Positions 24,901 through 26,653 of a stretch of 29,784 nt of DNA are shown one piece after another; position 1 is the stretch's first letter, and each line of letters starts with the position of its first letter. The DNA comes from Macrostomum lignano (taxonomy: Eukaryota). The DNA lies in NCBI GenBank assembly GCA_002269645.1, contig NIVC01000588.1:1-29784 (forward strand). The letters are read 5' to 3'. Below the pieces are notes generated by a model. That model was not told where the DNA came from. It saw only the letters and a list, made by a program, of their open reading frames with translations, and did no database searches. A program made the translations under genes and the position numbers.

Positions 24901-26653
24901 GCTTACACACTACTAAGCAAGGATGTGATGGTGCAAGGAGACCAGCGGGCGACACGCAAGTACTGTGATTTCCAATTCTTACAAAAATATCAATGAAGAG
25001 TCAAGAACATAAGCATTAGTCTCATTTTACGTTTTCATCACACGAAAATTCTAAACGAGAAAACGAAATCTACTTTAGAACTATCGACTGAGACAACACG
25101 AAGCGCTAACAGCGACTCTGCCCTCGAGGGGCCAGACGCTCTACTCGCCGCCTCCTCCGAGTAGCGGCGCCGTCCTTTCTCTCATCCTCGGCATCATGGA
25201 CGGCTACGCTGGAGATTCAGCAAAGGCGAGGTCGACGAAAGACGGCTACGTCAACTTTCTCCACCGTCTCGTCGAGTCGTTCAAGTTCGCTTACGCGAAG
25301 CGCTCCGGTCTGGGCGACGCGGCCTTCGTGAACGTGACCGAGCTGGTGGCCAACATGACGAGCAGCAGCTACGCGTCGGAGCTTCGCAGTCGCATCACCG
25401 ACGATGCCACGCACGATGTCAACTACTATGGACCAATGTTCGAGTGGAAGGAGGACTCTGGCACGACTCACGTGTCTCTTGTGGACTCTGACGGCAACGC
25501 CATCGCCATAACGTCAAGTATCAATACACAGTGAGTTGACAGAGAGTGCATTAAAGTGCTTTCAACTATTGTGCACATACTTGTAGCATATTTAGTCTGG
25601 ATTGCTAATAACAGTATGTACGTACTTCATCATAGACTGAAAAAATCCAGAGCGTGCAGTATATGCTTGTTCGAGACAAGCGAAAATATTGTACAAATTT
25701 ACAAGCTCATTATACGATCCGTATTTGGCTGATTTTGATTTTGATTGATTTAAAAATGACCCAGCAACTTGATTTCTCTGTTCTTCAGTTTCGGCTCCCG
25801 AGTCCGAGGCAACCGCACAGGCATTTTCTACAACAATGTAATGGACGACTTCTCACAGCCAAACAAAACGAGCAATTCTACTCTACCTCCAGCGCCCACA
25901 AATTTTATCGAGCCCGGCAAGCGTCCGATGTCTTCAATGGCCCCGACTATTCTCGTCGACTCCAGCGGTGCCGTCCAGTTTGTCAGCGGCGCTTCTGGTG
26001 GCTCGCGCATCACCACGGCTGTCGCTTACGCACTGGCCAGACAGCTGTACCTGAATGAGACGGTCAAGGCGGCTGTGGACTCCTACCGACTGCATCACCA
26101 GCTGGTGCCGAATTGGATCACTTATGATAAAGACAAGTGTGATTTACCCGAGGTAATTTCCCTACATATTACTAAGGTCACATTTGCGCCACACCGCGAC
26201 GCTTGATTAAGATCAAACAGTATAAAGAATTGAATTCTAAAAAACGCCTTTATCGCAGATCCTGAAAATTTATATGATGCACTTTTCACTGCCAAAAACA
26301 TTAGCGAGATAGGAAGTTTTGTCATTGCAAGCGTAAACAAGTCGCCGCAATCCTCTAGAAATACCATCGATGTCCATTCATGATGCCTAATTTGAAGACA
26401 TAAAAATCAACTATGGATTGAGCTAAGTCAAGGTGGAGGTTACAGTGCAATAGTACAGCATGCAGCAAGCATTATCTTGTGACAATGGCGTGAAAACGCA
26501 TTCCAGATCATCGAGTCGGAGCTGCGTCGCAAAGGGCACGAGTTTAAAAACGTGACTCAATTCAGCGTGGTAGAGGCCATTCAACGCCTGCCGGACGGTC
26601 GATGGCAGGCCAATAGCGACTTCCGCAAGCCGTCAGATACTGGTGGCCTATAA
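21935..26653 (+). CDS. ggt: Gamma-glutamyltranspeptidase paralog 3 (about 621 aa; divergent donor site; first exon tentative)
   Basis: join(21935..21960?,22393..22538,22739..22976,24113..24605,25079..25530,25789..26152,26507..26653) = 1866 nt, all GT-AG and in frame. TM IAVAVVLVLVVVVVVVVAVAFVL. Catalytic Thr 25463-25465 retained. Reads TSSINTHFGS, NNVMDDFS and a lid PNKTSNSTLPPAP. The first exon has a good donor (GG|gtaaga) and the correct phase. Confidence 0.88.
22436..22495 (+). repeat. Coding (GTT)n microsatellite forming the GGT3 transmembrane helix
   Basis: GTT/GCT/CTT triplets with 8 consecutive GTT at 22457-22480, inside exon 22393-22538. Confidence 0.85.
23059..24066. repeat. (TTAG)n tetranucleotide array, about 252 units, in GGT3 intron 3
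   Basis: Essentially perfect; one TAAG variant near 23091. Preceded by a short (ATTT)n run. Confidence 0.98.

Follow-up and report, generated by a model that had tools for sequence, protein, structure and literature searches.

The window analysed here is a whole 29.8-kb contig of the free-living flatworm Macrostomum lignano (NIVC01000588.1, assembly Mlig_3_7), which holds four tandem paralogs of the gamma-glutamyltransferase family (GGT, PF01019). The third of them, GGT3, carries a group of substitutions at the donor pocket and the lid loop of the enzyme, and judged by the residues that it has changed and kept it is a reasonable candidate for altered substrate handling. Gene models were built by hand from splice sites and paralog homology, and the hand-built models of GGT1 and GGT2 match the annotated proteins P0004 and P0002 residue for residue. 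The four genes are located as follows.

3264-8707, plus strand: GGT1 paralog, seven exons, identical to annotated P0004 (Mlig028621g2).
14388-21144, plus strand: GGT2 paralog, seven exons, identical to annotated P0002 (Mlig013069g3).
21935-26653, plus strand: GGT3, seven exons, 621 residues.
28271-29784, minus strand: GGT4 paralog, cut by the contig end; exons 4 and 5 clean, exon 3 with small indels.

GGT3 shares 74-77% identity with the neighbouring tandem paralogs, of which GGT2 is the nearest to it in exon 5. The M. lignano genome is neopolyploid and its assembly redundant (PMC5730564), and a GGT3-type gene was found on three further contigs, L001 (NIVC01000330.1), L002 (NIVC01003402.1) and L003 (NIVC01004791.1), all with the same substitutions. 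The L002 copy has a clean open reading frame (ORF) and is annotated as a 636-residue protein, P0121 (Mlig022267g1). L001 also carries GGT4', an intact counterpart of GGT4; relative to it, exon 3 of GGT4 (29367-29784, minus strand) has at least eight one- or two-base indels and an in-frame TAG but just eight mismatches, and this damage looks like an unpolished contig end, not a pseudogene. The exons of GGT3 in the window, together with one alternative splice site, are listed below.

21935-21960, plus strand: exon 0, with the ATG, encoding MCSGNIEE plus two bases; no other ATG ahead of exon 1 has an in-phase GTAAG donor.
22393-22538, plus strand: exon 1, type II membrane anchor, with poly-Val encoded by a (GTT)n run.
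22739-22976, plus strand: exon 2, with a Cys pair and with Gln at the human H81 position, in NFQSAGIGGG.
23015-23016, plus strand: alternative GT donor, 38 nt downstream of the conserved exon 2 donor, used by the annotated protein P0001 on L001.
24113-24605, plus strand: exon 3, with the equivalent of the FRE Arg107; the most diverged exon.
25079-25530, plus strand: exon 4, with the end of the large subunit, the autocleavage site and the start of the small subunit.
25789-26152, plus strand: exon 5, with the pocket, the lid loop and the SS and GG motifs.
26507-26653, plus strand: exon 6 and stop codon, with the K562 equivalent kept.

Given the conserved exon 2 donor at 22976/22977, the spliced ORF of GGT3 runs through seven exons and 621 residues without frameshift or stop. 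A reading made earlier from the letters of the window only (the sequence-only reading) had called the ORF intact, and this holds across the seven exons if that donor is used; P0121 has exactly these splice sites. The donor (AG/GTAGGG) lies at a site conserved in GGT1 and GGT2 and is used by P0121, and the sole caveat to an intact ORF is possible use of the donor 38 nt downstream. Exon 0 is 100% conserved in L001 and agrees with the N-terminus MCSGDIEEGNSNTK of the transcript-derived P0121, which bears out exon 0 (MCSGDIEEG...), all splice sites and the canonical donor of exon 2 in the GGT3 model. Exon 1 differs in length and sequence among the gene copies. Residues 33-66 of P0121, in the membrane-anchor region of exon 1, were predicted to be a helix by AlphaFold2 (AF2), and the (GTT)n run for the poly-valine anchor (22430-22480) shows a 3-bp indel and several substitutions between GGT3 copies. 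In exon 3, pairwise comparison with the paralogs gave nonsynonymous divergence (dN) of 0.16-0.22 and synonymous divergence (dS) of 0.67-0.77. Most of intron 2 is occupied by a near-perfect (TTAG)n microsatellite (23059-24077, about 255 copies, 99% matches); in the L002 copy this intron lacks about 416 bp, and the length of the array thus varies among copies.

The nucleophile and the altered positions of GGT3 are given in human GGT1 numbering, which was transferred from the light chain of human GGT1 (4GDX_B / 4GG2_B) by a phmmer alignment without gaps (E=5e-43).

25463-25465, plus strand: nucleophile Thr (Thr430; human T381), kept; DSG/TTHVS aligns to residue 1 of 4GG2_B.
25517-25519, plus strand: T399S, AGT giving TSSIN; the paralogs have ACC, ACC and ACA, giving TSTIN or TATIN.
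25529-25530 and 25789, plus strand: Y403H, split codon CA/T for His; the paralogs have TA/T or TA/C for Tyr.
25838-25840, plus strand: E420V, GTA giving NNVMDD; GAG in all three paralogs.
25871-25882, plus strand: lid tip SNST, encoded by AGC AAT TCT ACT, equivalent to human N431-G434; NYYG, NFFG and NYFG in the paralogs.
25892-25894, plus strand: S438A, GCG, at the C-terminal end of the lid loop.

The sequence-only reading had described four of these changes relative to the other three paralogs, and all four were confirmed codon by codon; in the alignment with human GGT1 that it had proposed, they map to T399, Y403, E420 and N431-G434. S438A was absent from its list. It had placed the changes at the gamma-glutamyl pocket and the lid, which is right for E420 and the lid but not for Y403, a residue of the Cys-Gly subsite. 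The human lid loop is defined as Ser428-Ser438 (PMC4568574). The loop of GGT3 keeps its full length, with N431, the aromatic residue 433, G434 and S438 all changed. At the nucleotide level, a more economical alternative reading of the lid change is insertion of a Ser together with loss of G434, and the lid is without an aromatic residue under both alignments (position 433 is Ser, or Thr in the alternative). The SNST tip creates a second N-glycosylation sequon (N-S-T) in the lid, next to the shared N-K-T. The FRE Arg (R107), N401, D422, D423, S451, S452, G473/G474 and K562 are kept in GGT3, and the oxyanion-hole motif GASGGS and the alpha-carboxylate-ligand motifs FRESAP and PMSSM are retained. 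The alignments thereby agree with the earlier statement that the nucleophile Thr, the FRE Arg, the Asn, the Asp and the SS and GG motifs are preserved.

In human GGT1 bound to glutathione (GSH), the alpha-nitrogen is hydrogen-bonded to N401 and forms salt bridges with D423 and E420, and Y403 is hydrogen-bonded to the glycine carboxylate (PMC7949050). The sequence-only reading had named E420 as a ligand of the donor alpha-amino group, as this structure shows (PMC7949050), and the roles that it gave to the second Thr and the lid aromatic are as described in the literature (PMC8062742). A literature search found no direct study of E420 mutagenesis in human GGT1. The E420 position is naturally Gln in E. 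coli GGT, and Ser in place of the second Thr permits processing, which is comparable in H. pylori T398S and slower in B. licheniformis T417S (PMC8062742). In bacterial variants of the alpha-amine ligands, loss of acidic ligands relaxes the need for a free alpha-amino group (PMC8062742). Activity as a glutaryl-7-aminocephalosporanic acid (glutaryl-7-ACA) acylase was created or boosted in E. coli D433N and B. subtilis E423Y/E442Q/D445N, and it went up 963-fold in the latter (PMC8062742). The lid aromatic gates the pocket, and H. pylori Y433A has strongly lowered activity with unchanged substrate binding; the lid-less GGTs of Bacillus are active, have open pockets and act on polymeric substrates such as poly-gamma-glutamate (PMC8062742).

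GGT3 and its paralogs were aligned with 103 other animal GGT1-like proteins and residues were counted per column, with the following result.

Position 399 (n=103): T 100, S 3; GGT3 has S.
Position 403 (n=103): Y 51, R 15, H 13, F 11; GGT3 has H.
Position 420 (n=103): E 93, Q 4, L 3, A 1, D 1, G 1, V 0; GGT3 has V.
Position 431 (n=103): N 103; GGT3 has S.
Position 433 (n=103): F, Y or W 103; GGT3 has S.
Position 434 (n=103): G 97; GGT3 has T.
Position 438 (n=103): S 102; GGT3 has A.

The nucleophile Thr is present in 103/103 homologs and in GGT3. By these counts, T399S is rare but conservative, Y403H is an ordinary family variant, and the lid changes are unique within the 103-protein sample. 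At position 420, Leu, Ala or Gly occurs in five of the 103 proteins and Val in none. E420 was lost independently in Branchiostoma P0084, P0087 and P0091 (Leu) and in Acanthaster planci P0036 (Ala), and P0090 is also listed (Leu, Ala or Gly). The A. planci protein combines T399S, E420A and G434C, which parallels GGT3; the E420-less paralogs of amphioxus and starfish keep N431 and the lid aromatic, and none of them has Val at 420. Animal GGT paralogs with altered active sites are thus already known from amphioxus, starfish and a wasp. The venom gamma-GT of the wasp Aphidius ervi is divergent and possibly non-functional from active-site mutations (PMC4035087), and it is likened to GGT3 by description, not residue by residue. 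In a database search with the 71-residue pocket and lid segment for relatives with V420 or without the lid, none of the four scored candidates carried the changes.

At 121 columns with at least 90% conservation, GGT3 deviates at 9, as compared to 7 for GGT1, 4 for GGT2, 9 for GGT4' and 10 for the distant paralog P0005. The four deviations that are unique to GGT3 all fall within residues 448-487, which contain 19 of the 121 conserved columns (hypergeometric P=4.6e-4), and outside this segment GGT3 has no unique deviations at conserved columns. Because its deviations are not above those of the paralogs and the unique ones all lie in 448-487, the change in GGT3 is focal, affecting the donor pocket and the lid, and the protein is not degenerating in general.

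The profile search and the AF2 prediction were made on P0121, a GGT3-type protein that is eight residues off the window copy, with GGT2 as the control for AF2. P0121 matched PF01019 with E=5.7e-162 and 540.5 bits (cut-off 27) over profile positions 7-511 of 512, and by this match GGT3 is assigned to the gamma-glutamyltransferase family (PF01019; MEROPS T03, N-terminal nucleophile (Ntn) hydrolases). The AF2 model, made from a 108-sequence alignment, had a mean predicted local distance difference test score (pLDDT) of 90.8 and a predicted template modelling score (pTM) of 0.86. In the catalytic domain, pLDDT fell below 50 only at residues 496-498, the N-S-T tip of the lid, and the mean for the lid block was 63 in the GGT3-type protein vs 80 in the GGT2 control. 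Foldseek returned chains of E. coli, B. licheniformis and human GGT1 at probability 1.00 with template modelling (TM) scores of 0.86-0.95; against the human GGT1 heavy and light chains the TM score was 0.92-0.95 and the root-mean-square deviation 1.2-1.7 A. The model gives weak support to a normal alpha-beta-beta-alpha Ntn fold with an ill-defined lid, as the confidence of AF2 follows the alignment. The alpha-amino ligand set N401/E420/D423 defines the canonical substrate site, not the fold family, and in GGT3 it is incomplete, with N401 and D423 kept and Val at 420. The aromatic gate that marks the lid-loop subgroup of GGTs (F433, Y444 in E. coli) is missing from GGT3, and a loop of about 11-12 residues is kept.

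Human GGT1 (4GDX, 4GG2, 6XPB) and the invertebrate glutathione hydrolase 1 proenzyme-like proteins are about 42-45% identical to GGT3. The type II anchor, the heavy and light chain architecture, the core residues and the length of the lid loop are like those of human GGT1, whereas E420V, T399S, the change of H81 to Gln and of Y403 to His, the loss of the lid residues N431/F433/G434/S438 and the gained N-S-T set GGT3 apart. With human GGT5 (gamma-glutamyl leukotrienase) it has in common a Cys-Gly subsite without the His81/Tyr403 pair: GGT5 has Gln81 and Pro403 (PMC7949050), GGT3 has Gln81 and His403, and Gln at 81 is also found in GGT2. Human GGT5 acts as a hydrolase on GSH and GSH conjugates, with about 3% of the GGT1 Vmax, and leaves gamma-glutamyl-p-nitroanilide (gamma-Glu-pNA) uncleaved (PMC7949050). 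However, it keeps all gamma-glutamyl ligands including E420 (PMC7949050), whereas GGT3 is without E420 and is a lineage-specific flatworm duplicate. GGT3 as an ortholog of GGT5 was ruled out, as the tandem paralogs are closest to it, the next relatives, invertebrate GGT1-like proteins, have no more than 49% identity, and E420 is not conserved. The class IV cephalosporin acylases and the bacterial variants described above are similar to GGT3 in their GGT fold (B. halodurans 2NLZ was a Foldseek match) and in the loss of an acidic alpha-amine ligand. The hallmark of these acylases, which are prokaryotic and soluble, is the change of Asp433 (human D423) to Asn, whereas GGT3 keeps this Asp (NNVMDDF), alters 420 and is thus not of the class IV type. 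Like the lid-less Bacillus GGTs and CapD, GGT3 has a pocket without the cover of an aromatic-gated lid; unlike in these enzymes, in which the lid segment is deleted, its loop is full-length with a changed sequence and probably glycan-bearing.

The altered codons stand next to a segment that has been homogenised among the four genes.

25139-25498, plus strand: gene-conversion tract among the four paralogs, 360 bp, with sharp boundaries inside exon 4.

Across the tract, mismatches per 30 nt number 0-2 among GGT2, GGT3 and GGT4 and reach up to 6 when GGT1 is one of the pair, and from 25499 onward pairs with GGT3 show 10-13 mismatches per 30 nt and other pairs 5-9. Exon 4 has the lowest dS of all exons (0.14-0.31 vs 0.35-0.57 gene-wide). 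The sequence-only reading was correct in that the GGT3 changes lie just outside the homogenised tract, which stops abruptly with a jump of mismatches at 25499. A GGT3-specific meaning of this boundary was ruled out, since all paralog pairs diverge after 25499. The relationships among exons are mosaic: GGT3 goes with GGT1 in exon 2, GGT2 with GGT4 in exon 3, and GGT3 with GGT2 in exon 5.

Selection was estimated as Nei-Gojobori dN/dS (omega) over exons 2-6, and for the branches by a crude parsimony count of the changes private to each paralog.

GGT3: 54 synonymous and 72 nonsynonymous private changes, omega about 0.46.
GGT1: 34 synonymous and 50 nonsynonymous private changes, omega about 0.51.
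GGT4': 21 synonymous and 30 nonsynonymous private changes, omega about 0.49.
GGT2: 35 synonymous and 24 nonsynonymous private changes, omega about 0.24.

Pairwise dN/dS was 0.21-0.29 for pairs with GGT3 vs 0.22-0.25 for other pairs. By these estimates, GGT3 is under purifying selection like its paralogs, with no sign of neutral decay. Several of the replacement codons need two steps, one of them synonymous (ACC to AGC to AGT; GAG to GTG to GTA), and because these codons carry a later synonymous step, the new residues of GGT3 are old and retained. GGT3 as a general pseudogene was ruled out by the intact ORF in two copies, an omega that matches the paralogs, and no excess of deviations outside the pocket.

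The L002 copy differs from GGT3 of the window by three nonsynonymous and three synonymous changes in exons 2-6, and P0121 differs at eight residues overall. The Mlig_3_7 annotation was built from RNA-seq with StringTie/TACO and TransDecoder (PMC5730564), and because the P0121 model belongs to this annotation, a correctly spliced full-length GGT3-type mRNA exists in at least one copy. A literature search for Mlig004909, Mlig013069, Mlig028621 and Mlig010592 found nothing, on expression patterns or otherwise. The other two copies carry indels. On L001 (9887-10149), a 13-bp deletion in exon 2, within the conserved ATVLCVGVSNF segment, causes a frameshift, and the private changes comprise about eight nonsynonymous and three synonymous ones, including M421I, E426D and D427G beside the cleavage site; by this pattern L001 is a decaying GGT3 copy that evolves neutrally. 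Its annotated protein P0001 (PAA85373.1) starts from an out-of-frame ATG and uses the donor 38 nt downstream of the homologous one. On L003 (2177-2630), exon 4 carries four 1-bp indels at about 2.5 kb into the contig. K318R is common to L003 and GGT3 of the window, and L003 probably represents the same locus, assembled redundantly and with noise; its indels, like those in GGT4 exon 3, look like unpolished contig ends rather than biology.

From its conserved residues, GGT3 would be a type II membrane-anchored proenzyme that cleaves itself before Thr430 (human T381). Thr430 would act as the nucleophile with a Gly-Gly oxyanion hole, and Arg107, Ser451 and Ser452 would hold the donor alpha-carboxylate. 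E420V would remove one of the two carboxylates that form salt bridges with the donor alpha-ammonium, with N401 and D423 remaining, and the binding of the alpha-amine may be weaker and less specific. The pocket may stand open at all times, or a glycan may cap it in place of a gate, and such a pocket would be expected to favour hydrolysis over transpeptidation and to tolerate bulkier or alpha-N-altered donors. The Cys-Gly subsite would be GGT5-like (Gln81, His403), and efficiency on GSH would be lower and activity on gamma-Glu-pNA poor.

We tentatively favour, with somewhat less than even confidence, the reading that GGT3 is a maintained GGT with altered donor handling, i.e., with weaker alpha-amine recognition and an ungated pocket. 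The Gln at 420 in E. coli, the Ser variants of the second Thr and the lid-less Bacillus GGTs suggest by analogy that such changes may leave working enzymes. The sequence-only reading had proposed neofunctionalisation, and the focal change, the purifying selection, the old multi-step codons and the transcription are in its favour, while a signal of positive selection is not found. This last result is one of several that weigh against a maintained enzyme with altered donor handling: omega is below 1 everywhere, including codons 440-490, in the pairwise, crude branch and nonsynonymous to synonymous (N:S) counts. The best protein match to GGT3 outside M. lignano has no more than 49% identity, and among the matches there is no ortholog from another Macrostomum species or flatworm, so that long-term retention of GGT3 is not supported by orthologs from other species. 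The window copy is unannotated on its contig and has no identical protein in the database, and since the GGT3 copies are 97-99% identical, RNA-seq reads are not assignable to one copy. If the donor 38 nt downstream (23014/23015) were used in GGT3 of the window, an in-frame TAG (AGG TAG, 22977-22979) would truncate the protein, and this donor is the one used by the sole annotated model at the L001 copy. The full GGT3 dosage is not needed, because L001 is frameshifted with about 8:3 private changes and a fourth copy has four 1-bp indels. The lid change could also simply cripple the enzyme, by analogy with the lid-aromatic Ala mutant of H. pylori (PMC8062742).

This last point leads to the alternative that GGT3 is an impaired or early-decay gene, whose turnover is cut or abolished and which persists through recent duplication, gene-conversion repair or a non-catalytic role. 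We consider this unlikely, though a serious possibility. Of the two salt bridges that the alpha-nitrogen makes, one is with E420 (PMC7949050), H. pylori Y433A loses most of its activity with the lid aromatic, and N431, the aromatic at 433 and S438, conserved in 100-103 of the 103 homologs, are all lost in GGT3. The frameshift and the N:S of about 8:3 in L001, the four indels in L003 and a terminal-branch omega of 0.46, which is not low, are in line with impairment, and there is precedent in animal GGT paralogs with mutated active sites, e.g., the venom gamma-GT of A. ervi (PMC4035087). However, GGT3 has kept its nucleophile and oxyanion hole together with R107, N401, D423 and S451/S452, the unique deviations at conserved sites are confined to a 40-residue segment, and the omega of GGT3 equals that of GGT1 and GGT4', whose sites are canonical. 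The ORF is clean in two copies, one of them with a full-length transcript model, the later synonymous changes in the replacement codons point to long retention without further damage, and the L003 indels, close to the end of a contig, resemble assembly noise, like those in GGT4. It is also conceivable, but in our opinion quite doubtful, that GGT3 is a functionally ordinary GGT with tolerated variants, and that the paralogs differ in place or time of expression (subfunctionalisation) and not in chemistry. The same purifying selection acts on GGT3 as on its paralogs, and D423, at which mutations have the strongest effect on binding in other GGTs, is unchanged. Position 420 is occupied by Gln in E. 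coli and by Leu, Ala or Gly in some animal paralogs, Ser at the second Thr permits processing, His at 403 is common, and lid-less Bacillus GGTs are fully active. Against this, five to six changes at positions conserved at 90-100% are grouped in the pocket and lid (P=4.6e-4) and are unlikely to be kinetically silent, none of the 103 homologs is without the lid aromatic or N431, and mutations of the alpha-amine ligands or the lid in bacteria measurably shift specificity or rate.

Errors of sequencing or assembly, or a mis-spliced reading, are an extremely improbable source of the substitutions. Contig ends in this assembly do carry many 1-bp indels, but the GGT3 changes are substitutions, several of them multi-nucleotide, and the same codons occur in four independent contigs (the window, L001, L002 and L003) and in three annotated proteins; the agreement of the four contigs rules out a sequencing artefact. 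The GGT3 model uses splice sites homologous to those in GGT1 and GGT2, and the models of these two genes match annotated proteins exactly. A stronger form of altered donor handling would make GGT3 an animal GGT subtype that has no need for a free donor alpha-ammonium, has an ungated and glycan-shielded pocket and acts on non-glutathione substrates, with the E420L/A paralogs of amphioxus and starfish as independent inventions. Its substrates would be, for example, gamma-glutamyl amides of the glutaryl type or with a modified alpha-N, or large molecules that bear gamma-glutamyl groups; we regard this stronger form as improbable.

An active GGT3 of changed specificity would show, in a natural animal enzyme, the kind of pocket re-engineering known until now from mutagenised bacterial GGTs alone, and would be a direct test of the role of the eukaryotic lid loop and of the invariant Asn431, Phe433 and Ser438. 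It would also show how tandem duplicates of a neopolyploid genome drift apart at the active site even as the adjacent exon is homogenised by gene conversion. An impaired or unchanged GGT3 would simply add another diverged copy to a multigene family. No long-standing open question is touched by these results. The case is tidy and unsurprising for an expanded gene family, and is not a remarkable discovery.

Several other features were found in the window. In the intron after exon 5, the donor is GC (GCAAG) in GGT2 (19951-19952) and GGT4 (28269-28270) and GT in GGT1 and GGT3. The last intron of GGT1 contains a tandem array (7771-8407, period 32/64 nt, about 20 copies), and the long minus-strand ORFs that this array produces are spurious. 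A repetitive ORF of 279 residues, rich in Cys and Trp, lies ahead of the GGT cluster (979-1818, plus strand) and weakly matches the fibronectin type I-like domain PF23003, with 22.8 bits, below the cut-off of 27. Remnants of a DDE_3 (Tc1/mariner-type) transposase are present on both strands at 16168-17157, within the 3.2-kb first intron of GGT2. Between GGT1 and GGT2, an intact 375-residue ORF (9807-10934, minus strand) matches DUF3504 (E=8e-22), QRICH1 and, weakly, Phage_integrase, and it is a Crypton-like gene or mobile element derived from a tyrosine recombinase.

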